Positions 18,208-46,570 of a DNA stretch of 64,000 nucleotides are shown one piece after another. Position 1 is the stretch's first letter. The number at the start of each line of letters is the position of its first letter. Below the pieces are notes generated by a model. It ran no database searches. It was not told the DNA's origin and saw nothing but the letters and a program-made list of their open reading frames with translations. The position numbers were made by a program, and so were the translations under genes. This stretch comes from Mobula birostris. Its lineage: Eukaryota. The DNA lies in assembly GCF_030028105.1 (NCBI RefSeq), contig NC_092374.1, positions 178,770,057 to 178,834,056 of the forward strand, in the 5' to 3' direction.

Positions 18208-19447
18208 GGTATTTGTCACAAAACTGTGGTAAAAATATTTACAGCACATATAATATTACAAAGGCATGGACCATAATGGTAACCCAGACAATGCACCATA
18301 AAATTAGCATTTAGATTTACAGGTCTGTTGCAGCTCAAACCTGACATAACAATGTTCTTTTTTAAGAGACGATGCTAATCAGTCTCTTCCAGCTAATCCA
18401 GCACAGCATTGTGGGCCGAAGGGCCTGTATTGTGCTGTAAGTTTTCTATCTTCCTGAATTGCTGGAAGTGGACTCTGGATAAAATGTCAGAGCAATGAAC
18501 CCAGGGCCATTATAGCACAGGGTCATTTGGTCGGTCAGATCTCTATATCCTGAGACATCAGGTTGATGGAGTCACTTGGCACAGTCTGTGTGCAGGTTGC
18601 ATAGTCTTCCTGTGACTGGCTGGGTTTCCACTGGGTGCTCCAGTTTTCCTCCACATCTTGAAGATACCTGGGCTTGTAGGTTTATTGGCCAGAATAAATT
18701 GTCTCCAGTGCATAGGTAAATTGTAGAATTTGAGGGGAAGTTGCAGGGGTGTGGGAAGGGTAAATAAATTGAGTGGTGGAATCCAGGGGTAGTTGATGGG
18801 AATGTGGGAGAATATTGAGGAGGTTGTTGTGTAAATGGGCACTTGATGGGCTTCCATGTTTTGAGACTATGATCACAGCTGGACACTTCTGACCTTCGAA
18901 CATAAAAGGTGAGCAAATAGTAAATCTAATTCAGAATTAATCTTTGTGTTCTGTAATTCATTCCTCTTCCTGATTACACACTGCCAGTCAACCAGCGCAA
19001 CTTAAGCGGAGTCTCTGATCAGACGCTTCACGACACAAGCACTTTCCCTTTCTCACCACTGCAGTCTGCTTCTTGTGTTGGTATCATTTGTGTTGATTGT
19101 TCGCTACTAGCATCTATAACAGAAAGTCACAAGATGAGTGAAGATTCTGGACAAAGTTTATAATAAAAACTCTTGATGGTAAGAAATAATCCTAAATAAT
19201 CCTACATGCTGTTGTTACGCATACACACAAAGTCTACACAGGGCCACTGTCCCACAAGAGGTGTAGGGCTTGGGGGGATTAGGCTGATGGCATGAAATTG
19301 GAGCTAGTTGAGTGGGCACCATGGTTGCATGGACACAATGCGACAAAGGCCCTATATCCATGCTGAATTACCCTGTGATTCTAAACACTTCATGCTTATC
19401 CTTGGTCCCTGTGCATTAAAACCATGTTATTTGCCGCGGTGTTCATA

Positions 19448-19695: not shown

Positions 19696-19769
19696 TCAGA
19701 CATTGGAGTAGGGGATGATCTTAATACAAAGACTGTAAAGTTTCCTGTTATTCCATCTGTGGTATACAG
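19696..19769 (-). CDS. MHC-I: MHC class I terminal coding exon ([24 protein letters not shown])
   Basis: Acceptor ttacttttcctgccag, phase 1, TGA at 19696-19698. The preceding 108-nt intron is in frame and has no stop codon. Confidence 0.6.
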
Positions 19770-22700
19770 CTGGCAGGAAAAGTAACGGGATAGAATCTTG
19801 AATCACATACAATGGGATGCCACACCCATACTGGCAATACCCTACAGAGTACAGCATATTGGCATTTTGATACTGACCTGATTTAAATATCGTCCCCGTG
19901 GATTCTAAACAAAGAAAGATGCACACATTAGCTGTTGAGAAATACCACCAACAAAATATTTCAGAGGCTTCTTTTGAACTTCTTAAAACATTTTCATTTA
20001 AGAGTGACCAAAGGTAGCTCAACAACAATGTCACATCAATGCGGTATGGTTCGTGAAATGCCTTTGGTCACAATTTACAAGAAGGCATCCTTGAGGACTA
20101 ATCATATCCAGAGCAGATGGTCAGAGGATAAGGGAGGCTGGGCCATCCGACGGATGCGAGAGGGAGCACCGGGCCGCCGGACAGGGGTGAGAGGGAGTGC
20201 CTGGCTGTTGGACGGGGGCGAGAGCCAGCACCAGGCCACTGGACAGGGACGAGAGGGAACGCTGGGCCACTGGACAGGGGCCAGAGGGAGCACTGGGCCG
20301 TCAGACAGGATGGAGAGCAAGAGCCAGCACAGGGCCCCCGGATGGGGAAAAGGAGGAGTGCTGCACAACACTTTCTTGCAATAAGTTTATGAGACTGTAC
20401 ACAGATCTCCCAGCCACTTGTTGCTTCTTTGGGCTGGAAGGCACAATGTCCACATGCACATAGACTGTGTGTAGCTGCAGTCCCAATTCACATATCTGAG
20501 GGAGCTTCTCCTCGCCTTCTGGTTGGATTTAAGCTCCACCCTCTTTGTATTTGGTCAGCTAGTGCAGGGGGACACAGGACAGGAAGAGGATGCCTGGTTA
20601 ACTTGTTCCTTGGGTTGGCCAAGTTAAATATCACAGGATCCTGGAGGCAGGTAGCTGAGGGCTCCATCCGGGCTGCCTGCCTGGCAATCCACCAGGGGTA
20701 CATTCACACCCAGGTATCCATGCAGAAATAAGATGCAATGCCCACGGGCACCATCTAGTTAGTCCAGAAACATATGTCCCCACAGGGCATACATTGCATT
20801 CTAGACGAGGATGTGAATATTTTAATTTAATTGGTCTTCATCAATTGTTGTTGCTTAGTGTTTTGTTGCAGAGTTGTAGCATTGTGGTTCTTGAAATAAA
20901 TTTATTTTTGTAAAGAAAATGAGGATGTGCTGCTAGAAAAGGAAATAAGAGAGTGCTTGATGGTTAGTCGGGATTTGGAGAATGAATGGCCTGTCCCTCG
21001 TGATAGACTATTGATCATCATCTCTGCCTGATCTCTGTTCAGTTCTGCAGCCTACAATTTCACTGCTGACATCTCAGCACATAGGCCAAGAGGTGCTTCG
21101 GGTGAATCAAACCTTGCAACTGTGAGCGACCCATTCATGAGCTTGGCATGAAAACTGAAGTACACCACTCAGTCTTACCTCTGCTTGAGCAGATGCATTT
21201 TATCACTCCTTTACTGTACATCAGCCAGATGCAAACAGCTCCCACAGCACTGATAACTACCAGCAGGTTGAGGATAATCAGCCATATAGTTACTCCACTG
21301 TCTGGCTCTAATGAAGCAAGGAGAGAATTGTTACCAGATCACTGTGCAGTGAGCATCAGTCCACCTGCACTTTTCCCATGCCTTACACAAGGCTCCCCCT
21401 ATTCCTTACAAATAGTAGAATAATTGCAGCATAGATTAAGGCCATTCCATATCAGGTCAAAGGAAGGACATTCTGGCCAGTGCCTCTCCGCACAGACTGT
21501 TAGGACAGGTTTGAGTGAAAGTTCAAAGTAAATTTATTATCAGAGTATACATATTCTACCTAGAGACACAATATACTACATTGAGATACAAGTTCCTGCA
21601 GGCATTCACAGTAAAACATAGAAATACAGTACAGTCAATGAAAAGCTACACACAAAGAGTGGCGAACAGCCAATGTGTAAAAGAAGGCAACGGTAAAAAT
21701 AAAAAAAGCAAGTAAAGAGTAATGAGAACATGAGCTCTACAGTCCTTGGAAGTGAGACCATAGGTTGTAGAAATAGTTCAGAGTTCAGGTGATTGAAGTT
21801 AACCATGCTGGTTCAATAGCCTGATGGTGTAGGGAATAACTGATCCTGTCCCTGTTGGTTTGGGACCAATAGCTCCTATACCTCCTCCCCAATGATAGCA
21901 GTGAGAAGAGAGCATGACCTGAAGGGAGGAGGGGGGTGGAGGGGGGGGGTCCTTGATGATAGATTCTGCTTTCTTGTGGAAGCTCTCCTTGTAGATGTGC
22001 TCAATGGTGGAAAGGGCTTTGTCTATGATAGACTGTGATACATCTGGTGCTGTTGGGAAGCAGCACCATCATCAGTACCACTGTGCCTTCCCTTGCAAGC
22101 CTGTTATCTAGCAGTTCAGGGACATCTTCGAACAGATCATAAGGAGAAGCAACCTACCATCCTGATCTCCATACCTGCCCACACATACCTGACCCCTGAC
22201 CTTACTACCCAGTCTCTTTTCTTTCTTTTTAAATCTTTTTATTAATTTTTCAAAATTATAAACTCAATAACAAAGTTGGTACAAAGAGATTGGGATAATG
22301 TTCATCAGCATATATAAAATGAATTTTAAGTATCATAGATATAAAAGACTTTCAAACTCATAATGAGATTAATCATTAAAAAAAGAAATAAAAAGAAAAA
22401 AAATATATATAAACAAAAAAAAACCCAAAAGAAAAAGAGAAAAAAAACCCAAAAAAAGCAAAACAGGGCTAGACCAACAGCTTGTATCAGACATGTTCAC
22501 TAATGTCTTCAACTCCTCTCCTCTCATATAATTTAAGTTTAGAAAAAAGATTCGGAAAGGTCAGATTACATCATATGAAAATGTTGCATAAAAGGTTTCC
22601 AAGTTTCTTCAAATTTAACCGAAGGGTCAAAAATATCACTTCTAATTTTTTCTAAATTTAAACTTAATATGGTTTGAGAAAACCATTGGAATGTAGTTGG

Positions 22701-25700
22701 AGGGTTAGTTTCCTTCCAGTTCAACAAAATAGATCTTCTCACCATTAAAGTAACAAAAGCTATCATTCGACAGGCTGAAGAAGACAAAGATCTATGTTCT
22801 ACCATTGGCAATCCAAAGATTGCCGTAATCGGATGGGGTTTTAAATCAAAGCATAGAACTGTTGAAATAATATCAAAAATGTCTTTCCAATATTTTTCCA
22901 AAAGAGGACAGGACCAAAACATATGAGTTAAAGTAGCCACTTCAGAGTGACATCTATCACAAGTAGGGCTCTGTGGGAATAAAAATGAGCTAGTTTATCT
23001 TTGGACATATGAGCTCTGAGTACTACTTTAAATTGTATTAATGTATGTTTAGCACATATAGAAGAAGTACTAACTAATTGAAATTTTTTTTCCAATTTCT
23101 CTATAGGTAGGGAAAGTTGAAGCTCCCTTTCCCATTCATTTTTGATTTTATCAGATATATCTGGCTGTAATTTAATAATTATATCATAAATTATTGCTAT
23201 TAATCCCTTCTGCAAAGGATTAAAACCTAAAATTTTATCAAGAATGCCAGAATGATTTGAAGTCAGAAAGGTAGGCAACGTGGTATTTTTAAAATTTCTT
23301 ATTTGTAGGTATCTAAAAAAATGGGATCTAGGCCAATCAAATTTCTCAGATAACTGCTCAAAAGACGTAAAGCAGTTATCCAGAAATAGATCACGAAAAC
23401 ATATTATATCTTTCATTTTCCATATCAGAAAGGCTTGATCCATTACCGAGGGTTGGAAAAAGAAATTAGATATAATAGGGCTTGATAACATAAATTCATT
23501 CAGGCCAAAAAATTTACAAAATTGAAACCATATTCACTATGTTTGTTTAACTATAGGGTTGAAAATTTATTTATTCAATTTAGATAGTGCAAAAGGCAGC
23601 GAAGTTCCTAAAATGGAAGCTAAAGAAAACCCTTGTACAGAATGGCCTTCAAGGTTTACCCAATATGGTCGTGGAGTTATATTCTAATCTTGTGTCCAAA
23701 ATATTAAGTATCGGATATTAATTGCCCAGTAGTAAAATCTTAGGATAGGCAATGCCAAACCACCCTCTTTCTTAGATTTCTGTAAGTATTTTTTACTTAA
23801 TCTGGGATTTCTAGTTTGCCATATATAAGAGGAAATTTTAAAGTCAATAGTATCAAAAAAAGATTTAGGAATAAAAATCGGTATCGCTTGAAATAAATAT
23901 AAAAATTTGGATAAAATCATCATTTTAATAGCATTAATACGGCCAATCAGTGATGGAGACAAAGGGGACCATTTAGTAATCAGTTGTTTAACCTGATTAA
24001 TTAATGGTAAAAGGTTGAAATTGAATAGATCCTTATGTCTCTTAGTAATTTTAACTCCCAAATAAGTAAAATAGTTAGTAATCACTCTAAATGGACAGTT
24101 TCTATAAATGGGAACCTGCATATTTAATGGAAGGAGTTCACACTTACCTAGGTTCTGTTTATAACCAGAAAAACTACTAAACTGAGCAAGCAAAGTTAAT
24201 ACTGCTGGAATAGATTTTCCTGGGTTAGAAGTATGTAATAGTAGATCATCTGCATATAGTGATAATTTATGAGTCTCATTTCCACGGGTAATACCAAATA
24301 TATTAGGAGAGGAACGAATGGCAATAGCTAGTGGTTCCAAGGCAATATCAAATAGTAGTGGACTAAGAGGGCAACCCTGCCTAGTACCACAGAATAAATG
24401 AAAAAAAGGGGATCTTTGATTGTTAGTAAATACCGAGGCCAAAGGGGTAAAATATATCAGTTTAATCCAGGAAATGAATATCGGACTCAAATTAAATTTC
24501 TCAAGGGTATTGAATAAATATATCCATTCAACTCTATCAAAAACTACCCAGTCTCAGTATGGCAGTGGTCTTGGCACTTGAAAACTCCTGGCAGATGGTT
24601 GAGAGCTTCAAATTCCTCAGTGCAAACGTCTCCAACAATCTGGCCAGATCCAGGTACTTTACCACCACAGCCGAAAAAGCACACCAGTGCCTCTGCATCT
24701 CAAAGTTTTAAAAAGTTCAAAGCAAATTTATTATTAAAATCATATATGTCACCATATACCACCCTGAGATTCATTTTCTTGTACACATTCACAGTATGTA
24801 CAGAGAAACGTAATTGGATCAATGAAAATCTGCACACAAAGTGGACAAAGAAAATAAAACAAAAACATTAATAATAATAAATAAATAACACTGGACAACA
24901 AAGATTTTGCTTCCTGAATACTTTTGGGTGTATCTTATGGATTTCAGGCTGCTAATTATGAAAATCACCATGAAATTTCCCTATCACGCACCATTTTTTT
25001 GAGATTGCCCATATTGGTTATTTCAATTCATAATCCAAGTCAGAATAACTAAGGCCCAGATTAAGGAAGGAATTTCTGTTGGCCCACAAATCAAACAGGT
25101 CATCAATGACAGGAAATTTAAAGAACTTCAGTGGAAATGGAGGAAATTGCATGGAAGTCATTCAAGAATGTTGTTGAATTTTTTCTTGGGAACTACAGAG
25201 CACCAAACTACGCGCAGCTGGTTAACAAGATGTCCCAAGCAGATGAAACCATGAAGTGCAACATGTCACTAAAGGTTCACTTCCTGCATTCCCATTTAGA
25301 CTTCTTCCCAGCAAATCTTGGCATTGTCAGTGAGGAGCGTGTTGAAAGGCTTCAGTAGGATATTGTGGACATGGAGAAATCATATCAGGGAACTGGAATC
25401 CATCAGTGCTGGCTGATTATTGCTGGACACTTAACGCAAAGTCTCAGACACTGAGATCAGATGAAAATCATCAGCAAATTGAACTACTGCAAAGTGACAG
25501 CACCATGATGCAATTTAACACATTACATTCAATAAAAGTTAATTTCCAGTTTCTCCAAATTCCTCTGTGATACAAGTAGTCTGAAATTGTATTTGTGTTC
25601 AGTTTCAAGCATAAACAAAAAAAATTCTGAGGAAGCAACGCTTATGAAAAAAATAAATAAGCATCTCAGAGACCATGAAAATTCAGCCTGTCCCCATTGA

Positions 25701-28700
25701 TCCTCACCAATTTTTAATTGATGCACCATATCTGGATACATCACAGCTTGTTTTGGCAATTGGCTACCCAAGACCACAAGAAACTGCAAAAGTTGTGAAT
25801 AGAGCCCAGCCTCAATTCCATTGACTCTGCCACACTTTTCGCTGCCTCAGGAAAGTGGGCAACATAAGCAAGGACCCATCCCCCACCAGTCAGTTTTCTC
25901 TTCTCCACCCCCCCCCGACCCAAGATATTTTCTGTTATCCCTCCTCCCACTGAGCAGAAGATATAAAAGCCTGAAAGCATATGTGACCAGGATCAAGAAT
26001 AGCTTCTATCAGATCCCTGAAAAGTAGTCCTCTTTTATGCTTGCAGACGAAATCTCGACCTCGCAATCTACATCAACGTTGCCGTTGCATCGTATTGGCT
26101 ATCTGCACTGCACTTTCTATGTTACTGTAACTCTATATTCAACATTGTTTTCTTTTAACTACCTTGATGTGCTTATGTATAGAATGATCTTTCTGAAGGG
26201 CACACAAACTGAGTGGTTTTCACTATATTTTGGTACATGTACTGGGAATCAGAGGGGGAACTTCTTCACTCTGAGGATGGGGCGAATGTGGAACGAGCTG
26301 CGAGTGGAAGTGTTAGATGGACGTTCAATTGTAACATGTGAGAGAAATTTAGATAGGTATATGGATGGATGAATATGGAAGGCCATGATCTGGGGGGTGC
26401 AGGTAGATAGGACTAGGCAGAAGAGTAGGCTGGCATGGACAAGCAGGGCTGAATGGCCTGTTTCTGCCCTGTAATGCTCTATGATTCTACATGACAATAA
26501 TAAACCAATACAAATACTGATATCTTACACCCACACACCCCACAATACCTTCTCCACCCTTTCACCCCATGATTTACTCATTACTCATCCATGTCTTACC
26601 CCAGGTGAAATCCACTCCTTTCGGCCTGCTGCTGTGCTGCACATGACAGACATGTTGCCGTCTCTCCGTAGGCTCTAACAGCAAGGACACCTTTATCTGG
26701 TAGGTGTTGTCATGGTTGGGTAAAATGCTAGAGTTTGCATGTGGGGGAAGAGGTTGGCCATCCCTAAACCAGGTCACAGTGATGGCCTGTGGGTAAAAGC
26801 CAGTGGCCAGGCAATGGAGAATGAGGCCTTCCCCATCTGGAGTCATCTTGGAGTAGACCATCACATCTGGGACAGCTGTGGGAGAAGACAGTTAGTGTTA
26901 GAGATACACAGCTTGCAGACAGGTCCTTTGGCCCGATGTACTGTAAGCGCTGAGTGAGTGTGAGTGTGAGAGTGTGGAGCATGAGTGTGAGAGTGTGGGA
27001 GCGTGGGAGTGTGAGAGTGTGGGAGTGTAGGAGTATGAGTGTGGGAGTGTGTGAGTGTGTGTGCGTGGGAGTGTGCACGTGCGGGAGAGTGGGAGAGGGA
27101 GGGGGAGGGGAAAACAATGCCAGAGACGGAGTGGGCATGATAGGGAGCAATCAAGAGAGGGCAAGAAAGCAATCGAGTGAGAGGGGGCGAGGTGATCAAG
27201 AAAGGGAGTGATTGAGAGTGAGAGATTGATAGAGAGCATTGGAAAGACAGGGAGCGCATTAAAGAGTGGTAGAGAGAGAAAGAGCATTGGAAAGACAGGG
27301 AGAGCATTAAAGAGTGGTAGAGAGAGAAAGCGACCACAAAAGAGAGAGAACGCAAGTGATACAGAGTGTGAGCAAGCAATTGAGAGGGAGAGAGAAAGCA
27401 ATAGAGAGCGAGTGATTGAGAGGGAGCGAGAGAGACAGACGGGAACAGAGCTGACAAGAGCCGCTGCCTCACTGCTCCAAAGAACTAGTTTGCTCCTGAC
27501 CTCCAGCACTGTGTTTATGGAGTTTGCATGTGCTCACTGTGACTGTGTGGGTTTGGGGAATTTTCTTGGTTGCTCTGGTTTTCTCCTACATCCCAAAGTC
27601 ATGCATACTGGTGGGAAAGTCATCTATATTATCCACTGTGAATTGCCCTCAGTAATTACACGAGCGATAGAATCAGGATTGTGGTGAAGGATGGAGATAA
27701 TTGATAGGAACATGGGGAGAATAAAATAGCTTTTCTATACTCAATGGTCAATTTATCAGGTAAAGAAGTGTTCCTAATAAAGTGTCCATAGGAGTGGAAC
27801 CCAGTGGGGTCTTCTGCTGCTGCAGTTTGTCCATTTCTAACTTTGATGTGCTGTGCATTCAGGATGCTGTTCTGCACGCTAAGTCCTAACATGCAGATAT
27901 TTGAGTTACTGACACCTTCTCGTCAGCTTTAACCAGTTGGGCCATTCTCCTCTCTTATTAACGAGGTGTGTTTGCCCACAGAACTGCTTCTCACTGGAAT
28001 TAGTTTTTTTGTTTTTTTGCATGATTCTCAGTAAATTCTAGAGACTGTTGTGCATGAATATCCTAGGAGATGAGCACCTCATCTGGCACCAACAATCATT
28101 CCATGGTCAAAGTTACTTAGATCACATTTATTTCGCATTCTGATATTTGGTCTGAACAACAATTAAATGTTTTGACCATGTCTCTATGCTTTTATGTATT
28201 GAGTTCCTGCCACATGATTGGCTGATTAGATGTTTGTATTAACAAGTAGGTGTACCTGTTCAAGTATACTCCAGCCAAGGTTATGAGGCCTGGTCCCACG
28301 GGCAGGTTTTCACCAATGACTGGCTAGATTACAGGCAACACAGTCACTGCCTAAGCAAAAGCTGCCAAATATTTACTGATAGGTTCAGCAACCAACAGCA
28401 CCACTTGTTGTAATGTGCATGATCTTACAATATATTGTGAAATGGTGCTATAACCAGACATAAACCACTAACTAATATGACGATATAGCAAATGCTGTGT
28501 GCCCAGATGACACTTCAACAGCAGTACTGAAGACCTGCGTCTCCAGAACTTGTCGTGTCCTTGGCCAAGTTGTTCCAGTCCAGCTAACATCACTGGTATC
28601 TACCCAACAATACGACTGTAAGACCATAAGACATATTAGCAGAATTAGCCTATTGAGTCCGCTCCACCATTCCATCATGGCTGATTTATTACCCCCATTC

Positions 28701-34700: not shown

Positions 34701-37700
34701 ACTGTCAAAGACTACATCTAGTTTTCACAGTATTATTTAGTGGAGGAGATGAGAGCCTGCAAGGCGGTGGGAATGAAGCAGCAGGGAGCTTGGACAAGAT
34801 GGGAGAATGCGGTTGCGAGGAAAGTGACCTGGGCTGATCTTTGGAAAGCCGAACCACACTGCATCCAATTTCTCATCCATGCAGTGTACGATGTGCTTCC
34901 AAGCCCATCAAACCTGCACACATGGGGAAAGGCAGAGTCATCTGCGTGGCCACTGTGCTCCAAGCGAGGAACCCTGGAGCACATCCTCAGCGGCTGTGCA
35001 AGCGCACTTGGTGAGGGATGGTACAGGTGGAGGCATGATCAGTTCCTGAAGACCACCGCTGAAGCCGTCAGCGCAGAGGTTGAGTGGGCGAAGAGGTCCC
35101 GACCCTCCAAGCAGACCATTGCCTTTGTCAGAGCTGGGGAGCAGCCAATACCTGCCAAAAGGACATCTGCAGGCATTCTGACTTCTGCAAGGGACTGGCA
35201 GCTGTTGGTGGACCTCGAAGGGCAGCTGAAGTTCCCCAACCATATCGCAGCCACCACCCTGCGACCAGACATTGTCCTAGTGTCTGAGTCTACTAAGCAA
35301 GTGGTACTGCTGGAGCTGACAGTCCCATGGGAAGATAGCTTGGAGGAGGCCTTTGAAAGGAAGCTCTCCAAGTACGCAGGACTGGTCAGCAACTGTCAGC
35401 AGGCTGGATGGAGAGCGAGGTGTCTCCCAGTAGAGGTTGGTTGTAGGGGATTCATAGCATGTTCTTTAGTTAGAGCCTTCAGCATTTTGGGCATCGAGGG
35501 AGAGAGGAAGAGGAGAGCCATCCGCAGTACCACCGATGCAGCAGAGAGGGCCTCAAGATGGCTGTGGCTCAAAAGAGGGGAGCCATGGAGTCATAAGTAG
35601 CTAGCCATCTGGACACAAGCTGGGGTCTGATCAGCCCCGGCTGGGTCACCTGGAGGAGGGTGTATGATGTTGAAAGACCCGAAACACCCGATGATTCCAG
35701 GAACATCACTGAAGATGTGTCCAGAAGCATCAATAGATGTATGTACACAGCTAATTATTATTGTTTGTCTTTTTTTCTTTTGTATTTGTACATTTTGTCT
35801 CTTCTACACATTAGTTGTTTGTCTGTAATTGTATATGTGTAGTTTTTCATTGATTATTGTGTTTCTTTTACTGTGAATGCCTGCAAGGAAGTGAATCTCA
35901 GGGTAGTATATGGTGACATAGTCATGCTTTGATAATAAATTTACTTTGAATTTTTGAACTTTGATTGCAATTTGTAAAACACACTTTGAGGAGCAGATAG
36001 GTAATCTCAGAGACATAAAAGTGTCTGAATTCAGTAGACAACATGCTAGTTCTCATGGGTGGGTGAGAGTGGAGAGTCATCAGCTTCAAATTCCTGGCTG
36101 CCAACATCTCAGTGACGTTTCATGGGCATGGCACATAAATTAAATCATTAAAAAGGTCCATCAACATCTCTGCTTTCTGAGAAACTTAAGATTTGCCATA
36201 GCACCAAAAATGAGAAGAAACTTCTACAGAAGTACTATAAAGTATTCTGACTGGAGGCCTCTTGATTGGTATGGCAATTCCAATGCTAAAGAACACAAGA
36301 TATGGCAGGGAGTAGTGGACATAGCTTGGTCTAAAATGGACACAGCCCTCCCGTCCACTGACAGCATCTACAGGAGGTTCTGCCCCAAGAAGATGGCATC
36401 TATCAGCAGCATCTTTTCAATCTTGGTCATGCCCTCCTCTGGGTTTTGCCACTGGGCAGGAGGTACAGAAGCCTGAAGTCCTACATCATCAGCTTCAGGA
36501 TCAGATACTTTCCTACAACCAAGAGGTCCTTGAACTGACCTGCACGACACCAATCTACCTCAGCAATGGAGCAGTGCAGACCACCTCTAGAACTATCCTG
36601 GTTTTATTGTTGATTGTGTTTTTTTTTTGGAATAATGTCTCCTTTTTGCACATTTTTTCATTTCTATTCACCATCATATAGCTTACATATAACTTACCTG
36701 TATGTACAAATTATATTCTGCAATTGTGAGCCTGTGATGATGCTGCAAGCAAGTTTTTCACTGCATGTGTACCTCGCTGTATTTGTGCACATCACAATAA
36801 ACTTGATTTGAGTTGATTTGAATTGCAAAGGCACAGAAGGCTAAGGACTAAATGCTGGCAAACAGAACTGCTATAGATGAGGACACAACAGTTAGCATGT
36901 TTGTGATGGTCTGAAGGGACTGCTACTGTCCTCCATGAATCTATGACCCTCTCATTTCAAAATTTGCCTGCTTTCTTTTTTTTTGAATATCCCAGATGAT
37001 TCAGCTTCCCCTGCATAGGGAATTCCAGAGATTATCCATTCTCTCTGAGAGTGTCAATTGTGTCAAAATGCTGTTGATTGATGTCAGTACTGTTTTCAAT
37101 ACAATTATTCCCCAGATATTGGTTGGAAAATTGTCCATGTTTGGTCCCACTACTTGCCTCTGTAACTGGACCTTGATGTTTCTGATGAACATAGAACATA
37201 CAGAATAATACAGCACAGTACAGGCCCTTCAGCCCACAATGTTGTGCCGACCCTCAAACCCTGCCTCCCACATAATCCCCCACCTTAAATTCCTCCATAT
37301 ACCTGTCTAGTAGTCACTTAAACTTCACTAGTGTATTTGCCTCCACCACTGACTCAGGCAGTGCATTCCACGCACCAACCACTCTCTGAGTAAAAAAACT
37401 TCCTCTAATATCCCTCTTGAACTTCCCACCCCTTATCTTAAAGCCATGTCCTCTTGTATTGAGCAGTGGTGCCCTGGGGAAGAGGAGCTGGCTATCCACT
37501 CTACCTATTCCTCTTATACCTGCTGGTCTGCACTGCTTCATTCCTCTGAAGAGACCACACACTGCCCCTGTTGGCAGCAATGTCTCTGATCCCATCACAC
37601 ATAGCACTAGCACGCCCCTAGGGCCGTACTTTCAACCTACTGCTGTTCATTACACTAACACACAACTGCGTTGCCAAATCCATTCTAACTGCATCATTAG

Positions 37701-40700
37701 GTTCGCAGACAATGCAAAAGTGGTTGGCCTCATCAACAGCAATGATGAAACAGCAGGAAGGAGGTAGTGCAGCTTGTGGACAGGTGTAAACACAGCAACA
37801 TAAATCTCAATGTTGACAAGACTAAAAGAGATAATGTTCGACTTCAAGAAGATGCAGGCTGACAACTTCATACTACACATAATGGCTTCTTTATGGAGAG
37901 AGTCAGAAGCACCAAGTTTCTTGGAGTGCACATGACTGGCAATCTCCTATCTCCCCACCTTCCCCACATTTCCTCCCACCCTCCCATTTTCACCACCTTC
38001 TACCGGAGCACCAAAAAGAGTGTCCTAATCAGCTGCATTACTGTCTGGTACAGTAACATTATACATTATAATGTCTTACATAAACATGCACATCGCACTT
38101 CATGCCAACCTGTCAGTCTTCACACATGCCACTCAGGGATTGTGCTCATGTTATTTTGCGACTTTATGTGCCGGATTGGACGATCCAGGGGCGGCGTGGT
38201 GGTTAACACAACGTTTTACAGTACCAGCAATCCAAATTCAATTTCCACTGCTGCCTGTAAGGAGTTTGTACGTTCNNNNNNNNNNNNNNNNNNNNNNNNN
38301 NNNNNNNNNNNNNNNNNNNNNNNNNNNNNNNNNNNNNNNNNNNNNNNNNNNNNNNNNNNNNNNNNNNNNNNNNNNNNNNNNNNNNNNNNNNNNNNNNNNN
38401 NNNNNNNNNNNNNNNNNNNNNNNNNNNNNNNNNNNNNNNNNNNNNNNNNNNNNNNNNNNNNNNNNNNNNNNNNNNNNNNNNNNNNNNNNNNNNTCCTGAG
38501 ACTGCCTGGACAGGAATGTGGGAAAATGTGGGCTGACCACCAGGCATCTAGCTAACCGAGTTTTGGATCTTGGACTAGTGTAGATGAATGCTTGATGGTC
38601 AGACTGTTTCTGTAATGTGCGTCTCAATGTGAATAAAGTGGGGTGTAGGGAAAGTGGAAAGCACTTTAATGCCTCTGCATCCACCTTGGCCCTGAGAACA
38701 TTTTCTTTTACTCATCTGCTGGAGAGGCATTATTTATAGGCCCTTCATTACTGCCCCATTGAAGGTGAGGATGAACCATCTTTGTCGATCTGCTGGAGAC
38801 CTTCTGGTGAAAGTTCCACCAATAAGCCATTGGAGTGAGGTGCTGTATGCTAGGACTTAATGTCCAATGAACATTCAGGAGTGGCAATATATTTCCAACT
38901 CTGGATGGCGTGGGGAACCTGCAGGGAGTAGTGTTCCCATGCAAATTAAGCTTTTGACCCTCCTGGTGGTGGTCACAAGTTTTTGGTGAGGAACTGTGAT
39001 GGATTTCATAGATGGTGCAAACTGCAGCTGCCATCCACTCGTAAAGTAAGGAATGAATGTTCAGGGTGGTGGATGGCAGGCTGCTTTGACATCCAGCAAA
39101 GAGAAGAGTACACGTTAGCACTCCTGACGTGTGTAATCTGACTGGATTCATTGTCCGCAGCAGCAGCGAGGCCAGGGGAGAACTGATACAAACCTGCTAC
39201 ACAAATAAAACAGACTGTAGGAAACCAAAGGGCTGAGGTATAAAGAAAAGGTGGGACTGGATTTGGAGAACACAATTTGTATCCAGAGGGTGGTTGGATT
39301 CTGGAATGAACAGCCTGAGGGGTGGTGGACCAGAGACTCTCACAATGTTGAAGCATCTGGATGAGCATTTAAAGCACTAAGGCACAGAAGCTGTAGATGA
39401 AAAGCTAGTAAATGGAGTTATATGCAAAGGTACTCAATAGTCAACAAGTATATGGTGAACTGAAGGCAATTTCTGTGCTATATAATTCCAGAAGCTGTTA
39501 AGGGAGATGGTTTAGAGTCATACAGCACTACAGCACAGAAACAGGCCATTTGGCCTATCCAGTATATGCCAACCTGGTCTTTTGCCTAGGACCATCAAAC
39601 AGCACCCTGACCATAACCATCTATACCTCTCATCGATATACAGTACCAATCCAAGTTTCTCTTTAATGCTACAATCAAAATTGCACATATACCTTCTGCT
39701 GTCAACTTGTTCCATGCCCACAGCACACTCTGAGTGAAGAAATTCCCCCACAAGTTATAGAGTCATAGGTGATTCTTTATTGATGCAATCAGCCATTTCC
39801 CACAGCTTCATACCATGAACACGAGAGCAGCACAATGATTCAGCAAGCAGAGCAGTGCTCCACTTCATAGTTGTACTGTTCTCCTTGCTGAATAATTGTG
39901 CTATTATAAAGTTGCATGCTATTCAGACACAAACAAGAGAAAATCTGCAGATGCTGGAAATCTGAGCAACACACACAAAATGCTGGAGGAACTCAGCAGG
40001 CCAGGCAGCATCTATGAAAAAGAGTACAGTCGAAGTTTTGGCCCGAGACCCTTCAGCTGGACTGGCGAGAAAAAGCTGAGGAGTAGATTTAAAAGGTGGG
40101 CGGGGGGGAGGGAGAAAAACACAAGATGATAGGTGAAAACTGAAGAGTAAAGATCTGGGAAGTTAATTGGTGAAAGAGATGGTGAGCAACAGGAAAACAA
40201 AAAAGGGGAGGAGATCCAGAGTGAGGCGCTGGGTGGGCAAGGAGGTAAGGTGAAGGAGGGAAAAGGGGATGGGGGATGGGGGATGGGGGATGGGGGATGG
40301 GGGATGGGGAAGGGGGGGCATTACTGGAAGGTCGAGAAATTCTGTATATTGGTGACCCGACGTAGATTGGGAGACCGCTTCGCTGAGTACCTGTGCTCTG
40401 TGCGCCAGAGAAAGCAGGATCTCCCAGTGGCCACCCATTTTCATTCCACTTCCCATTCCCATTCCCATAATTCATGATGAGGCTACACTTAGGTTGGAGG
40501 AACAACACCTTATATTCCATCTGCATGGCCTCCAACCTGATGGCATGAACATCGATTTCTCGAACTTCCAGTACTGCCCCGCCTTCACCATTCCCCATCC
40601 TCTTTCTCTTTTCCATCTCTCACCTTATCTGCTTGCCCACCTGTTACCTCCCTCTGGTGCTCCTCCCCCCACCCCCCGCCACCTTTTGTTTCTTCCATGG

Positions 40701-43700
40701 CCTTCTGTCCTTATCTATCCTACTTCCACCTCCTCCAGCCCTGTATCTCTTTCACCATCAAATTCCCAGCTCTATACTTTCACCTATCACCTTGTGTTTC
40801 TCTCTCCCCTCCCTCCACTTTTTAAACCCTATTCTCAGCTTTTTCACTCCAGTCCTGCTGAAGGGTCTCGGCCCAAAACATTGACTGTATTCTTTTCCAT
40901 AGATGTGGCCTGGCCTGCTGAGTTCCTTCAGCATTTTGTGTGTGATCACAGATTGTAACCACTCTGCCGAAGACCACAAGAGTCATTACACTGTTAATGG
41001 CAAGACTCTCAGCAGTATTGATGTACAGAGGGAGTTGGGGTCCATGTCTATAGCTCCCAGAAAGGGGCAACGCAGGTTGATATGTTGGTAAGTAAAGTAT
41101 ATTCATGCTTGCCTTCATTAGTGGAATTTCTGAGGTCAAGAGTCAGGAAGCTATGTTGCAGCTTTATAAAACTCTGGTTACTTGGAATATTTCATCCGGT
41201 CCTGGCTGCCCCATTACAAGAAGGATGAGAAAGGTTTAGAGAGAGTGCAGTAGAGGTTCACTGAGCTGCTGCCTGTATCACAGGGCATCTGTTGTATGGA
41301 GGGGTTGGTCAAACTTGTGCTGTTTTATTCTCTGGAGTTGCAGCGGCTGTGGTGTGTCCATAACTATAAAAAAATGTCCAGGTATGACTTATGGAAGACT
41401 ATTTTAAGGGCGAAAAAACCCCCAATTTCCATTGTGGTTAGAGATGGAATTGGAGATGGAATCTGGTAGGGCTTGCAGACCATTACTTCCTAAAAAAGTG
41501 AAACCTAATATCATGTATGGCTGTGAATTTCACTCCCAGATGAGATCAATGCTTTTATTCATGCTTTGAGTAGAAGAATAAAATTACACCTGTGTGGATC
41601 CCTGCAGCATCTGATGACCCTGTGATCCCTGTCTTGGAGATCGGTGTTAGAACATCTTTCAAGAGGGTGAACTCTCACAAGGCATCAGGACCTGGTGGTG
41701 TACCTGGTAGAGTTCTGAAAACTTGTGCCAACCATTTGATGGGAGTATTCAAGGACATTTTCAATCTCTCATTACTGCAGTCAGAGGTTCACACCGGCTT
41801 CAAAAGGGTGACAATCATACCAGTGCTCAAGAACAGCAGGGTGAGCTGCCCCAAAAGCTATCAGCCAGTGGCACTCACACCTACTGTGATACAGTGCTTT
41901 GAGAGATTGGTCATGGCCAGAATCAACTCCTGCCTTTGCAAGGACCTGGACCTGCTGCAATATGTCCACAGTGATGCAATCTCACTGACTCTCTGCTCGG
42001 AATTGACTGCAGCTCAGCATTCAACACAATCAGTTCTAACCAACAAGTTCTAAAACCTGGGCCTCTGTACCTCCTTCTGCATCTGTATCCTTGAGTTCCT
42101 GTGAGGATCAGAAGTAACATCTTCTCACCCATGATTGTGTGCTGAGGCACAGCTCAAACCCATCTATAAATATGCTGACAACACAAATATTGTTGGGAGA
42201 ATTTCAGCTGGTGACGAGGAGGTGTATAGGAGTGAGACAGATCAGCCGGTAGAGTGGTGTCACAGTAACAAACTTGCACTCGAGGCTAATAAGACCAAGG
42301 AACTAACTGTGAACTTCTGGAGGGGAAACTGAGGGAACAAACACAATTTCTCTGTGAGGGATTAGAAGTGGAAGGGACGAGCAGTTTCAAGTTCCTGAAT
42401 GTCAACATCTTTGAGGATCTATCCTATGACTAAAATATTGATGCAATTACAAAGGCAGAACAGTGGTTATATTTCATTGGGACATTGGGGAGAATCAGAA
42501 TCAAAATCAGGTTTAACACTGCTGGCATGTGTCATGAAATTGGTTAACTTTGCTGCAGATTACAATACAAATTTATATATACAGTATATAGTTATATTAA
42601 ATAAGTAGTGCAAAAATAGAAACAAAAAAGTGGTGAGATAGTGTTCGTGGGTTCAATATCCATTCAGAAATTGGATGACAGAGGGGAAGAAGCTGTTCCT
42701 CAATCATTGAGTGTGTGCCTTCAGGCTTCTGTACAATGAGAAGAGGACATGTGATGGCTGATGGGCGTGCTTAATGATGGCATTGGTATGTCACCAGAGA
42801 CACTCACAAATTTCTACAGATGTACCGTGGAGAGCATTCTAACCTGTTGCCTCATCATCTGGTATGGCGGCTCCACTGCGCAGGATCGATAAAAGCTGCA
42901 GGAAGTTGTCAACTCAGCCAGCTCCACTGTGGTCACCAGCCTCCCCTGTATCCAGAATACCTTCAAAGAGAGATGACTCAAGGAGACGGCATCCATCGTT
43001 ATGCCATCACATGCCCTCTTCTCATGGCTACCATCAAGGATGAGGTACAGCAGCCTGAAGGCACACACCCAATGTTTCCAGATCAGCTTCTTCTCCTCTG
43101 CCATCAGATTTCTGAATGGACACTCAGCCCACAAACACTACCACAGTCATTCTTCCCTAACTTCTTCCGTGACTTATTTTATACTTATACACTTACTATT
43201 GTAATTTTTAGTTCTTTTATTATGTATTGCAATGTATTGCTGCCACAAAAGAACAAATTTCATGACATATGCCCATGATATTAAACCTGATTCTGATAAA
43301 ATTATGAGGGGCATAGATACAGAAAGCACCCAGTATCTTCATTGTTAAAACGTCTAATACTATAGGGCATACATCTAAGATGGGAGTGAGGGTAAATTTA
43401 AAAGAGATGTGCAAGGCAAGTTTATTTACACAGTAGGGATGAATTTAGTAAGGCATTTAATTGCAAATTTAATTATTTCACACAACATTGCAGGCCGCAG
43501 GATCTACTCCCGTAATGTTCTATGTTCTAAATTGCAGGGAGCTGAGTACACAGCACAGTCCATCACTCTGGTTACATTTCCCCCTACCTCAGGAAAGAAG
43601 ACAACAAACCCTTTGCACCCAAATCATTTTTGGTTCTCCCCACTCCTACTGGGAGAGGATTCAAAACTTGAAAACAGGAACCAGCTGCTTTAAGGACTGC

Positions 43701-45641
43701 TTTGGTCCAGCTGTCATAAAGCTCTTGAACAGACCTGCAGTAAAATAAATTTGAACCATCAACCTTACAGCCTACCTTGTTATGGCACTTGCACCTTATT
43801 CTCTGAAAATGTAATACTATAATCTGCATTCTTTTATTCCTCTTCTCTTTGCTCTACTTTGATGTACTTATGTTTTGAAATTATCTACAATGATAACATA
43901 CAAAACAAAGTTTCCCACTGTATCTTGGTATAGCTCCAATACCACATACAAGTTTGCTGATGATACCACTATTGTGGGCTGTATCAAAGCTGGTGATGAA
44001 TCTGCATACAGGAGGGAGATTGAAAATTTGGCTGAGTGGTATAATAACAACAACCTCTCACTCAATGTCAACAGTACCAAAGCACTGATTGTGGAATTCA
44101 GGAGAGGGAAACCAGAGGTCCACAAGCCAGCAATCATGGAGGACCAGAGGTGAACACCGTCAGTAACTTTAAATTCCTGTGAATCACCTTATCAGGGGAC
44201 CTGTCCTGGAACCATCATTATTGCGAAGAAAGCACTTCCTCAGGAGTCTGCGAAGATTCAGCATGTCATCAAAAACCTTGGCAAACTTCTATAGATATGT
44301 GGTGGAAATTGTGCTGACTGGCGGCATTATGGCCTGGAGTGGGAACACCAATGCCCCTCAGCAGAAAATCTACAAAAGGTGGATTTGGTCCTTTACATTG
44401 CAAGTAAAACCCACTAAATCATGAAACATTGCCATACAAAAGCTGCTTCTATCAACATCATCCTCACCACCCAGGCCGTGCTCTTTTCTGGCTGCTGCCA
44501 TCAGGTAGAAGGTATAAGTGCCTCAGGACTCACACCACCCAGTTCAAGAACAGTTACTACCATTATTACCCCTCAATCATCAGACTCTTGAACAAAAGGG
44601 GATAACTATACTCATTCTATCTCTGGTGTTCCCACAACAGATGATCTCACTTTAAGGATTCTTAAACTTGTTATTTCATGCTCCTTATTTATTGCTATCT
44701 ATTTATGTTTGTATTTGCAGAGTTTGTTGTTCATTGATCCCGTTTACAGTTACAGTTTTATAGATTTGCTCTGTATGATCCTAGAAAAAGAATCTCCGGG
44801 TTGTATGTGGTGCCATGTACGTACTCTGATACAGTAATAAATTTTACTTTGAACTTTGAACATCTGACGGAGGTCAGCAGACGAGAAGAACTTAAAAGGA
44901 AGCAGAAAAATTATCAGGGGGTTGAGACATTAGATCTGGGACAGAATCAACAACTTGGGTGGATTCGGCTGATAAAATAAAAATTGTACAAACACTGGAG
45001 GTCAGCGTTGAGCCTGGGCCGACGGCGCAGCGAAACAGCAATGCCACCAGATGCACCACCCCCAAGTCCTTCAAGCCACAGTTTTTTTTAATGATTTTGC
45101 CCTGAGGCAAGTCGACTGGAGTGATCCAAACACGGAGTTCCATAAAGTTGTAGAGTTAGAGGGGCGGGGGGATAGCCAGGTTGATTCCACCCTTCCACCC
45201 TTCCGGGAAAGAGTAGAGAGAGGGACAATCCTCGACAACAGGGGGCACAAAGAGCACACTGTGCGCTGCATGTCTGATGGGCCATGGCTCAACAACAGTA
45301 GAGCCCAGCCATACTGGAGGTGTGCAGATCACCCCTATTCCTGTAGTTCCGAAATCAATTTAAAACGGATCATTTTAATGTTGTCTGTTCCCCGTTTACT
45401 ACCTCCCCGGTTCTGTAATTATGCGTCCTGTTGTTAGTCAGGGAAGTTACACAGGAATCCTTCACTGGAGTCCTTTATCGGGCAAGGATTAAATATCACC
45501 CCTTTCAGACCCTAACCATAGTCTAAAATTATCAACGAAGTGTCTCCCGGGGCGACAGTGGAGGCTGGGTTGATGAAATCACCACTTACCTGGGCAAACC
45601 GGACGAATGGAAAGACACAGGGCACAGACTATCAGCAACAT
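19696..45641 (-). CDS. MHC-I: MHC class I heavy chain, 7 coding exons, 365 aa; probably nonclassical (UDA-like lineage, tentative)
   Basis: Hand-spliced model: 45590-45641 (52 nt), 33913-34176 (264), 31601-31876 (276), 26600-26875 (276), 21179-21307 (129), 19878-19904 (27), 19696-19769 (74). Total 1098 nt, open from ATG to TGA. All introns GT-AG and phase 1, with exon sizes typical of class I domains. The leader link and the two tail exons are predictions. Confidence 0.93.
19878..19904 (-). CDS. MHC-I: MHC class I cytoplasmic mini-exon (ESTGTIFKS)
   Basis: Branch point ctaat, acceptor atctttctttgtttag, 27 nt, donor CAG|gtcagt, phase compatible with the TM exon. Confidence 0.7.
20140..20347. 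repeat. Degenerate GC-rich minisatellite, about 30-bp unit, about 6 copies (MHC intron 5)
   Basis: Repeats of GGGCC(A/G)CTGGACAGGGGCGAGAGGGAGCAC-like units. Confidence 0.8.
21179..21307 (-). CDS. MHC-I: MHC class I transmembrane exon
   Basis: (E)[42 protein letters not shown]. Acceptor ttctctccttgcttcattag, donor AG|gtaaga, 129 nt, phase 1 at both ends. Absent from the supplied ORF track. Confidence 0.9.
22226..24550 (-). mobile_element. L1-clade LINE, 5'-truncated ORF2 (RT plus C-terminal region), in MHC intron 4
   Basis: [56 protein letters not shown] and THMFWSCP motifs; frameshifted; T-rich 3' region. Confidence 0.9.
24889..25650 (+). mobile_element. Chapaev3-like (CMC superfamily) DNA transposon relic
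   Basis: Begins CACTGGACAACAAA. Transposase C-terminal motifs [26 protein letters not shown] and [26 protein letters not shown]. Family assigned from recalled motifs; the 3' TIR is degenerate. Confidence 0.65.
26600..26875 (-). CDS. MHC-I: MHC class I alpha3 (Ig C1-set) exon
   Basis: (A)VPDVMVYSK...[21 protein letters not shown]...LPNHDNTYQ...HVCHVQHSS...FTW. Branch point ctaac plus acceptor tcttctcccacag, donor G|gtaaga. Confidence 0.96.
26950..27440. repeat. GT/GA-rich microsatellite and low-complexity tract next to the alpha3 acceptor
   Basis: (GTGAGA/GTGTGG)n then GA-rich sequence with an internal direct duplication of about 40 bp. Confidence 0.9.
31155..31405. mobile_element. Tc1/mariner-derived non-autonomous element
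   Basis: Degenerate TIRs TACACACAGTGGCTACATTATTAGG ... CTAATTAAGTGGCCACCTAGTGTA with TA ends. Confidence 0.6.
31601..31876 (-). CDS. MHC-I: MHC class I alpha2 domain exon
   Basis: (G)[12 protein letters not shown]...[13 protein letters not shown]...TTKDKWN...[17 protein letters not shown]...RK. C101/C164, T143, K146, W147, Y159 and Y171 are present. Acceptor ccttctccag, donor G|gtaggt. Confidence 0.97.
31960..32530. repeat. C/A-rich low-complexity degenerate tandem repeat (MHC intron 2)
   Basis: Recurrent CCATCCACTCACCATTACACTC-like units. Confidence 0.85.
32930..33840 (-). mobile_element. CR1-type LINE 3' fragment (MHC intron 2)
   Basis: Minus strand has GVLQGSVL...ISKFKDD and ...[27 protein letters not shown]. 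Confidence 0.75.
33913..34176 (-). CDS. MHC-I: MHC class I alpha1 domain exon
   Basis: (E)[35 protein letters not shown]...QPWM...DYWTKETQ...QRTKRNMT(G). Acceptor ttgtatttggcag, donor G|gtgcgt. Contains Y7, Y59, R84 and an N-x-T sequon. Confidence 0.96.
34737..35752 (+). mobile_element. HERO-like non-LTR retrotransposon (restriction-like endonuclease), 5'-truncated, in MHC intron 1
   Basis: Uninterrupted 286-aa ORF 34740-35600 with a zinc knuckle (W/C-PLC...LEHILSGC), RHD, RPDIV, ELTVPWE, KLSKY and VEVGCRGF, then a 152-nt 3' UTR. Confidence 0.85.
38276..38493. other. Assembly gap (218 N)
   Basis: Run of N inside MHC intron 1. Confidence 1.
39931..40942. mobile_element. Rearranged Penelope-like element with inverted tails (MHC intron 1)
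   Basis: A minus-oriented tail at about 39931-40330 and a plus-oriented tail at about 40480-40942 surround a GIY-YIG fragment and a (GGGGAT)n tract. Confidence 0.8.
41560..44840 (+). mobile_element. Cluster of degenerate Rex1/Babar LINE fragments (about 41560-42440, 42790-43295, 43885-44840)
   Basis: [25 protein letters not shown] and [11 protein letters not shown] motifs. Confidence 0.8.
45590..45641 (-). CDS. MHC-I: MHC class I exon 1, signal peptide [17 protein letters not shown]
   Basis: ATG at 45641 with an in-frame TAA just upstream, a hydrophobic core, and a consensus donor CCAG|gtaagt at phase 1 that joins alpha1 as ...VCP-E-THKLQY. It lies about 160 bp downstream of an SXY/ISRE module. 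Intron 1 is 11.4 kb and contains the N gap. Confidence 0.8.
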
Positions 45642-45796
45642 TCCCCAAACTTAATGCTCGGTCGGAACACAGAATAAAATTATATAAAAAATATAATGAA
45701 AACCGACAGATTTATCCACACAACTCTACGGCTTCATTTCCGGGTACTCGGTGCTAAGCCTGTTAAAAAAAAACTAAGCTTTTCCTATACAGGCAG

Positions 45797-45837
45797 CCAA
45801 TTAGAAGCTTAAGGAAATCTGATCACCAGTTACCAGG
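45797..45837 (-). promoter_or_regulatory. MHC X1/X2-Y module (RFX / CREB-like / NF-Y)
   Basis: The minus strand reads CCTGGTAACTGGTG (45824-45837; compare HLA-DRA X box CCTAGCAACAGATG) overlapping TGATCA. After a 19-nt spacer comes CTAATTGG (45797-45804; inverted CCAAT Y box). X-Y spacing matches the canonical 19-20 bp. Confidence 0.8.
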
Positions 45838-45860
45838 CAGTCTTGATGCCTGCAGTTTGA

Positions 45861-45872
45861 GAAATAGAAACT
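45861..45872 (-). promoter_or_regulatory. ISRE (IRF-binding element)
   Basis: AGTTTCTATTTC on the minus strand fits AGTTTCNNTTTC exactly, 23 bp upstream of the X box, the same order as in mammalian class I promoters. Confidence 0.82.
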
Positions 45873-46570
45873 AACAGAGAGGCGCGGCAGTTGCTGGTTA
45901 TAAACAGAAGTTAGAGTCCAGTTTTTTTGTTGTTCTGGAGCCTCGGATGTTGAGGGGCGGCCTGACAGAAGTGTATGAAATTATGCGAGGCAGAGATACA
46001 ATAGACATACTGTAGACCTTTTGCCAAGACCTATATTGTTTTTGAACTTTATTAACGTTCAGTAACATGCTGACAAGGCTTGGAAGATAGTTCAGGATTA
46101 AGGTATAACAGCCCAGTCTTAATGAGTAATAAGATACAAATTTCCTCTATGTTCTGCACTGAATTAATTAGCTGCACCACTAATAAAGGGGAGAGGCTGT
46201 TCCGAAAGAAGGGTTTCTGATTCATAATTTTTACTCGGTTCTCTTCCCCTCTGATATATCACAAATAAATGAAGGGAATCCCAGCTATTTTCTCAACGCA
46301 TTTTTGTCTTTTAAGAGTTGTCCCATGTACGTGGCTGCCCCAATTAACCAGTGGTCTAATTAACCAGGGAGGGAACATCGACTCAGACCTTGAGGCCTGC
46401 GTCGGGCATTTTCATGCCTTACAAGGTGCAGATCCCTCCCTCCCTCCCTAATTAACCAGAACCCACCGTATTTGCCGGACAGCAAATGGTAGGATGTGAA
46501 GTGCTTCCCTCTCCAGATGAGGGGCACTTCCCCTACTAACAGTGACATCTAAACAAATTCCACTCTAACC

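Follow-up and report, generated by a model that had tools for sequence, protein, structure and literature searches.

A single-copy MHC class I gene of Mobula birostris assigned to a non-classical lineage of cartilaginous fish, most likely UDA

Cartilaginous fish reportedly possess an ancient, MHC-linked, non-classical class I lineage, UDA, which is said to keep 8 of the 9 residues binding the peptide termini, to conserve its other peptide-binding residues among elasmobranchs, to be low in copy number and mono- or oligomorphic, to occur in Holocephali as well, and to lie outside the tight UAA/TAP/LMP block. Other class I molecules with which the gene described here can be compared are the classical UAA (nurse-shark structure 6LUP and the Triakis scyllium alleles), the non-classical shark UGA (PDB 9ch4, released in 2026), the mammalian oligomorphic class Ib molecules HLA-E and Qa-1, which present a conserved peptide set, and MR1, in which Lys43 is the residue linking the molecule to its ligand. 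UDA has been placed as a single-copy gene in the MHC-Ib cluster that lies close to B2M and BRD2 (PMC10751288), while UBA is derived from UAA and UEA is multicopy (PMC12562908).

The window, i.e., the whole 64,000-nt stretch of M. birostris DNA analyzed, carries a class I heavy-chain gene which is very probably the single-copy ortholog of an ancient non-classical lineage, most likely the published UDA. It has in common with UDA the presence of a single copy per elasmobranch species, the existence of chimaera relatives, the 8 of 9 termini residues, a groove conserved between species, and the position near B2M and BRD2 in the MHC-Ib cluster, which was seen in the case of the sawfish ortholog. Nothing essential differs: in the larger sample used here the groove is nearly rather than perfectly invariant (26/35 pocket positions), F replaces Y at position 116 in the stingray/manta branch, and the glycan sequon of M. 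birostris is shifted from N86 to N88. The comparative results confirm the published picture of UDA and open no new question. The gene is already present in the public annotation, but it now has a lineage name, which the automatic "MR1-like" annotation did not give; its 3' end has been corrected, and the assembly gap inside it has proved to be harmless.

Organization of the gene and its product

The gene is located on the minus strand, where it is complete and open, with seven coding exons (1110 nt) encoding 369 amino acids; all the splice junctions are of the AG/GT type and in phase 1. The initial annotation had described an open chain of seven exons, which is what was found, and a length of 365 residues, which is not: the predicted protein is identical at 369/369 residues to RefSeq XP_072115051.1 (Mobula birostris), named "MHC class I-related gene protein-like". 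The gene spans 26,614 bp, as in the public record, and its M. hypostoma counterpart spans 26,230 bp. Its features are as follows.

45590-45641, minus strand: exon 1, with the ATG at 45641-45639, the 17-residue signal peptide and one base of the codon that follows; donor GTAAGT; leader practically the same as in the Pristis and M. hypostoma orthologs; the 3' end of this exon recurs, in reverse complement, as an RNA loose end beyond 34179.
34177-45589, minus strand: intron 1, repeat-rich, 11,413 nt long including the estimated length of the assembly gap at 38276-38493.
33913-34176, minus strand: exon 2, alpha1 (264 nt, 88 aa), with Y7, Y59, R84 and the N88-M-T sequon; covered by spliced RNA contigs.
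31601-31876, minus strand: exon 3, alpha2 (276 nt), with C101, C164, N119, L123, T143, K146, W147, Y159 and Y171; RNA joint 31875/33912.
26600-26875, minus strand: exon 4, the alpha3 Ig C1-set domain (276 nt; Pfam C1-set); its first bases recur, in reverse complement, as an RNA loose end before 31601.
21179-21307, minus strand: exon 5 (129 nt), encoding the connecting peptide, the transmembrane helix and a juxtamembrane stretch rich in Cys; donor GTAAGA; homologous to the skate and Pristis transmembrane exons.
19878-19904, minus strand: exon 6, a cytoplasmic mini-exon (27 nt, ESTGTIFKS), the counterpart of which is ESTGTISKS in the M. hypostoma RefSeq protein.
19028-19113, minus strand: coding part of exon 7, the C-terminal tail ending in VLVS, with the stop codon TGA at 19030-19028; matched by the Pristis tail in tblastn; acceptor and stop read in the sequence; outside the coordinates initially given for the gene.
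18430-19027, minus strand: 3' untranslated region, extending at least this far according to the RNA word content; a common interspersed repeat begins at about 18440.

The last exon had first been placed at about 19767-19696, ending in IPYSNV and a stop codon. This assignment was wrong, since the exon has no counterpart in the tail of any ortholog and is missing from the RefSeq protein; the true exon is that at 19113-19028, and the tail it encodes is homologous to those of the Mobula hypostoma, Hemitrygon, Hypanus and Pristis proteins. The gene extends beyond 19696 by about 670 bp in terms of its coding sequence and by more than 1.2 kb when the 3' untranslated region is included. A Ser-rich 11-aa match to skate tails at 20937-20905 was also discarded as a chance or decayed match: it lacks a donor site, and the phase-1 donor of exon 5 does not lead into its reading frame. 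No further gene is called within 10 kb of the gene, which is located on the same 210-Mb record as the UAA-type gene P0299.

The product is a standard class I heavy chain consisting of a signal peptide, alpha1, alpha2, an Ig-like alpha3, a transmembrane segment and a long Ser-rich tail. The MHC_I (E 6.5e-34, residues 19-194) and C1-set (E 1.3e-15) domains were detected by Pfam, and a hydrophobic transmembrane segment is encoded in exon 5. The AlphaFold2 model (mean pLDDT 93.8) shows the class I order of secondary structure, the best structural matches being the peptide-presenting chicken BF2 (TM 0.90-0.91) and nurse-shark UAA 6LUP (TM 0.88), and the four cysteines of the disulfides C101-C164 and C203-C259 are all present and aligned. 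An insertion of two residues before the glycan site had been proposed in alpha1, with R84 depending on the gap. In HLA-A2 numbering, the stretch from the equivalent of Y59 to the end of alpha1 has the same length as in HLA-A2, so that there is no such insertion; R84 is unambiguous, and only the sequon has moved. The usual N-linked glycan site N86 is absent in M. birostris, where K occupies position 86, and N86-x-S/T is retained in M. hypostoma, Pristis, skates and the nurse shark; M. hypostoma and most of its relatives in the clade described below read R84-T85-N86-x-S/T. In that clade, the sequon is followed by one residue more than in shark UAA and chicken BF2.

Lineage of the gene

In the tree, the manta protein belongs to a clade (support 100/99-100) containing one gene per elasmobranch species, the topology of which is that of the species tree. 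The count over annotated proteins gave one member per elasmobranch species, including one in M. birostris. Among the members are nurse-shark QGX07421.1, labelled "nonclassical MHC class I antigen", and the sawfish gene LOC127585849, which is marked MHC-Ib and adjoins B2M, a ZFP2-like gene and BRD2 (supplement of PMC10751288). Sequences of the chimaera Callorhinchus form a sister clade (100/99), and a multicopy clade found only in sharks is also sister to the clade of the manta gene (98/87). The UAA-type clade (100/100) is separate and includes nurse-shark 6LUP, the Triakis alleles, and the manta UAA-type genes P0299 and P0311. The initial proposal of a non-classical gene belonging to UDA or to a sister lineage is supported by this separate clade, by the rejection of a UAA placement in the AU test and by the near-invariance of the groove. 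The name itself was reached from the features that UDA is reported to have (Almeida et al. 2020, J Immunol 204:892) and by elimination of the other lineages, the sequences compared bearing no UDA label.

Since none of the clade members compared is labelled UDA, the gene might instead be placed in a different non-classical lineage of elasmobranchs (UBA, UEA, UFA or UGA) or in a sister lineage without a name, for which the shark-only multicopy sister clade and the good match with the UGA crystal structure 9ch4 (TM 0.90) could also be taken to speak. This assignment is improbable, however. The identity with 9ch4 is only 34%, which indicates a different lineage, and in comparisons with the nurse-shark member of the clade, 9ch4 scores no better than chicken BF2. 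The clade of short, divergent class I proteins (305-321 aa) lies far off in the tree. UBA derives from UAA and UEA is multicopy (PMC12562908), whereas the clade of the manta gene is single-copy with chimaera relatives; in the sawfish it adjoins B2M, the site reported for UDA (PMC10751288).

The possibility that the gene is a classical, polymorphic, peptide-presenting UAA gene hardly deserves to be retained, this identity being ruled out by the tree. The likeness is real as regards the domain plan, the disulfides, the predicted structure and the eight termini anchors, all of which are kept, and the gene is well expressed in all the RNA runs examined. However, the gene lies outside the UAA-type clade, with which it shares approximately 36-40% identity, and forcing the batoid members into that clade was rejected (delta lnL 169, p-AU 0.0027). 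The pockets are fixed across species in the manta lineage and variable in UAA. The alpha1 domain of the manta gene is also one residue longer at its end, and the alpha3 domain four residues longer at its start; the tail is longer and Ser-rich, with juxtamembrane cysteines, and lacks the conserved end of the UAA tail.

Conservation of the groove and possible ligands

The alignment confirmed the residues first reported in the groove, namely Y7, Y59, R84, T143, K146, W147, Y159 and Y171, together with L123 and N119 in alpha2. Eight of the nine peptide-termini anchors are therefore retained, position 123 being Leu. Since Leu123 also occurs in 4 of the 13 UAA-type sequences, the 8 of 9 anchors alone are not a mark of a non-classical molecule.

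The pockets of the clade are nearly invariant. Among 14 elasmobranch members, 26 of the 35 pocket positions are invariant, as compared with 41 of 145 positions (28%) elsewhere (Fisher 1e-6), the mapping of HLA positions 45, 152, 155 and 156 onto the clade being approximate because it spans indels. When only the non-anchor pocket positions are considered, 20/26 are invariant in the clade (14 species) and 2/26 in UAA-type genes. The manta protein departs from the clade majority at a single pocket position, 116, where it has F for Y. The pocket residues are thus almost frozen across sharks, rays and skates. Near-invariant pockets throughout the shark-ray tree, in a platform that otherwise drifts, should be of some use in the search for a ligand.

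Within species, no differences were found over 543 nt of alpha1 and alpha2 in RNA samples X1 and X2, which come from the same species, and the contigs of X3 and X6 were identical to each other at all the listed positions; these comparisons cover two samples per species, which may be tissues of a single animal, and rare variants are lost in contigs. Among 12 skate transcripts, alpha1/alpha2 were poorer in variable sites than alpha3 or the tail, and their nine variable sites all fell outside the pocket positions.

These data are consistent with a chain that would pair with beta-2-microglobulin and would have a groove closed at both ends, accommodating short peptides whose N and C termini are free. 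Since, in the sequences compared, the pockets determining specificity vary neither within nor between species, a single ligand or a restricted, conserved group of ligands might be presented to a T-cell or NK-type receptor, and the initial suggestion of a restricted peptide set may hold. This mode would be more like that of HLA-E/Qa-1 than that of a polymorphic classical molecule, in view of the intact termini anchors, the invariant pockets and what appears to be little or no polymorphism. There is no orthology with HLA-E/Qa-1, however, and the chemistry of the groove differs: its center is unusually basic (R66, R70, R114 and K156), and D45 and E63 lie close to the B pocket, the mapping of positions 45 and 156 being approximate. 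There is some slight chance that this basic groove holds a single conserved self ligand, perhaps acidic or modified, and that the molecule serves as an HLA-E/Qa-1-like sentinel for an invariant T-cell or NK receptor, kept since before the shark-chimaera split.

MR1, to which the automatic annotation refers, resembles the manta protein in its class I fold (Foldseek TM approximately 0.80-0.82, 32-33% identity), but is not an ortholog: the manta protein keeps the peptide-termini anchors that MR1 lacks, and its structural similarity to MR1 is lower than that to the peptide-presenting BF2 and UAA. In the clade alignment, no Lys conserved throughout the clade was found in the segment aligned with Lys43 of MR1.

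Transcription and integrity of the gene

Spliced transcripts of this intact gene are present in two Mobula species. The splicing proposed initially could be followed in RNA contigs joining the leader to alpha1 and alpha1 to alpha2, the loose end beyond alpha2 being the start of alpha3. In four runs from the two species, the leader is spliced directly onto alpha1 with no letters in between. The joint 31875/33912 between alpha2 and alpha1, which skips 2036 nt, is present in all four runs, with one contig per run. The only run of N in the window, at 38276-38493, is inside intron 1, and since the RNA contigs join the leader straight to alpha1, this gap conceals no exon and leaves the reading frame untouched. 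The idea that the seven-exon model is an assembly artefact, with a leader from another gene copy, or a decaying pseudogene, prompted by the estimated-length gap between the leader and alpha1 and by the abundance of retroelement fragments in the window, can practically be discarded in view of this direct reading of the leader into alpha1, its orthology with the Pristis and M. hypostoma leaders, the frame open throughout and the similar spans in the two Mobula species.

The spliced-RNA runs X1, X2, X5 and X9 contain 100% of the words sampled from 18430-19113, as against only 7-25% of those from the intron-rich stretch 26500-34300. The lengths of the RNA contigs (1726 and 1740 nt) fit an end near 18420, a position close to which no poly(A) signal was seen; the contigs probably stop there because of the start of the common repeat.

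Gene model and transcripts

Class I alpha1, alpha2 and alpha3 domains were unmistakable in the open frames on the minus strand of the window, and the exon limits were set from the splice sites read in the sequence.

Exons of the class I gene (window positions)
Exon 1, 45641-45590, minus strand: ATG, 17-residue leader, donor GTAAGT
Exon 2, 34176-33913, minus strand: alpha1
Exon 3, 31876-31601, minus strand: alpha2
Exon 4, 26875-26600, minus strand: alpha3
Exon 5, 21307-21179, minus strand: connecting peptide, transmembrane segment and Cys-rich juxtamembrane stretch
Exon 6, 19904-19878, minus strand: 27-nt cytoplasmic mini-exon
Exon 7, 19113-19028, minus strand: tail and TGA stop

The acceptors are all AG, the donors all GT and the junctions all phase 1, and joining the seven exons gives a coding sequence of 1110 nt, i.e., 369 amino acids. 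A search started with the alpha2 exon and continued with follow-up searches reached a 90% cluster consisting of two proteins, XP_062894944.1 from Mobula hypostoma and the 369-residue XP_072115051.1 from Mobula birostris. The latter is identical to our model at 369/369 residues, which identifies the window as giant manta ray DNA. In the public record the gene spans 26,614 bp; this corresponds to 45641 to 19028 of the window and is near the span of the M. hypostoma gene (26,230 bp). The open seven-exon class I gene proposed in the initial annotation is thus borne out by the junctions and by the RefSeq identity, and the gene is already annotated publicly, as "MHC class I-related gene protein-like", with the exact protein in RefSeq. 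What is added here is its lineage assignment, the correction of the 3' end, the proof that the assembly gap is intronic and a broader survey of groove conservation; the overall result is sound and ordinary.

The 365-residue length and the stop at 19696 in the initial annotation have to be replaced by 369 residues and a stop in exon 7. The acceptor used in that model lies about 110 nt after exon 6; the resulting last exon (19696-19767) encodes a tail with no homolog and is intronic in the RefSeq-identical model, and the ITIM-like IPYSNV end was based on this wrong exon. Exon 7 aligns with the tails of Pristis, M. hypostoma, Hemitrygon and Hypanus, and all words sampled from 18430-19113 (100%) are present in the spliced-RNA runs, as compared with just 7-25% of those from the intron-rich region 26500-34300.

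The only run of N in the window (38276-38493) falls in intron 1, with the leader exon 7.1 kb upstream of it and alpha1 4.1 kb downstream, and is therefore crossed by no reading frame. When contigs from four RNA runs (X1, X2, X3 and X6) were aligned to 31400-34400, alpha2 and alpha1 were found on one contig per run (818 to 1740 nt) in all four cases, with the 2036-nt intron removed; the skipped intron has CT..AC ends, which read GT..AG on the minus strand. The unaligned contig ends match the flanking exons: as the reverse complement, the letters before 31601 give the first bases of the alpha3 exon, and those past 34179 the 3' end of the leader exon. The leader beyond the gap is therefore spliced straight to alpha1, and the gap conceals no exon. 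Since X1 and X2 show no difference from the window, while X3 and X6 have common differences reproducing the M. hypostoma protein (e.g., I43V, D54N, V163A and the PVFP leader), the gene is expressed in two Mobula species.

Lineage of the gene

Maximum-likelihood trees of 58 and 72 rows both place the window protein first with M. hypostoma, then with the stingrays, then the sawfish and then the skates. The enclosing clade comprises one gene per elasmobranch species (support 100/99-100), including the nurse-shark QGX07421.1, titled "nonclassical MHC class I antigen", and its sister is a Callorhinchus clade (100/99). The clade formed by the classical UAA-type sequences is separate (100/100) and includes the nurse-shark UAA structure 6LUP, the Triakis alleles, the Heterodontus sequences and the manta's own F10-like genes; constraining the batoid members with it lowers the log-likelihood by 169 units (p-AU 0.0027). 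Identity to the shark UGA structure 9ch4 is just 34%, and the trees also contain a divergent clade whose proteins are short (305-321 aa). A 2025 review gives UDA, UFA and UGA as single-copy and UBA and UEA as expanded (PMC12562908). Single-copy UDA sits with UEA in a class Ib cluster lying between brd2 and beta-2-microglobulin, and the sawfish ortholog LOC127585849 is listed as MHC-Ib directly after B2M and a ZFP2-like gene (PMC10751288 and its supplement). The proposal that the gene belongs to UDA or a sister lineage is therefore supported by the phylogeny, the features and elimination, and we take the clade to be UDA, some doubt attaching to the name. This lineage was reportedly published in 2020.

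The sister of this lineage is a multicopy clade, sampled here from sharks only (25 rows in the first tree); none of the sequences sampled is a ray member of it. In this multicopy clade, Y7 and R84 are absent from most sequences, and in many Y159 or Y171 is missing as well. The clade may correspond to the UEA lineage.

Groove conservation and putative mode of action

The window protein was aligned with 13 other elasmobranch members of the clade, three chimaera and 13 UAA-type sequences (including 6LUP), with positions numbered as in HLA-A2. The eight anchors Y7, Y59, R84, T143, K146, W147, Y159 and Y171, together with L123 and N119, were found as previously described. R84 is fixed throughout the clade with no gap required, so it does not depend on an alignment gap. 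The supposed two-residue insertion before the glycan site amounts to a shift of the sequon from N86 to N88, the sole change there: most members carry R-T/S-N-x-S/T, and M. birostris R-T-K-R-N-M-T. L123 is usual in the clade and also occurs in 4/13 UAA-type sequences, one of them from manta.

The sequon at the end of alpha1 (33913-33935) alternates within the lineage, being N86 in M. hypostoma, Pristis, skates and nurse shark, and N88 in M. birostris, Hemitrygon, Hypanus, Heterodontus and Pristiophorus.

Across 14 elasmobranch species, 26/35 pocket positions are invariant versus 41/145 of the other alpha1/alpha2 positions (Fisher, 1e-6). Among the 26 non-anchor pocket positions, 20 are invariant in the clade versus two in UAA-type genes, which show the reverse pattern. 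Twelve skate transcripts of the lineage have 32 variable sites, only nine of which are in alpha1 and alpha2 and none at pocket positions. The fixed groove residues include R66, R70, R114, K156, D45 and E63 (45 and 156 being mapped approximately).

Class I domains and both disulfides are present in the protein, and its structure was predicted confidently (pLDDT 93.8). The closest solved structures are the peptide-presenting chicken BF2 (TM 0.90-0.91) and shark UAA (0.88), MR1 scoring lower (about 0.80-0.82). The molecule would hold short peptides by their termini in a closed-ended groove, and its ligand set would be narrow and conserved because the specificity pockets are fixed. The fixed R66, R70, R114 and K156, along with D45 and E63, hint, speculatively, at a charged ligand.

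In two distant species, as represented by a skate transcript of this lineage (P0009, five contigs) and Hemiscyllium isoform X2 (P0160), alpha3 is skipped and alpha2 is joined directly to the transmembrane exon, which leaves the product in frame because all the exons are phase 1. This alpha3-less isoform may be recurrent.

Upstream region and remainder of the window

An ISRE-like AGTTTCTATTTC occurs upstream of the ATG (45795-45875, minus strand), with an inverted CCAAT (ATTGG) about 55 nt downstream of it. The RNA contigs reach about 87 nt beyond the ATG, provided that the 5'UTR runs uninterrupted in the genome, and the two elements precede the probable start of the transcript by about 70-150 nt. 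They fit an interferon-responsive class I promoter.

Introns 3 and 2 contain long low-complexity tracts (26900-27500 and 31936-32530) translating as His/Thr/Ser/Leu-rich repeats on both strands, which are non-exonic simple-sequence DNA. Besides the class I gene, the window contains no evident cellular genes; fragments of reverse-transcriptase-like retroelement ORFs are numerous and occur on both strands (157-831, 5724-6905, 23684-24490, 50406-50993 and 53991-54563). An open frame of 286 aa in intron 1 (34740-35600, plus strand), which has no class I similarity, is probably part of a mobile element.
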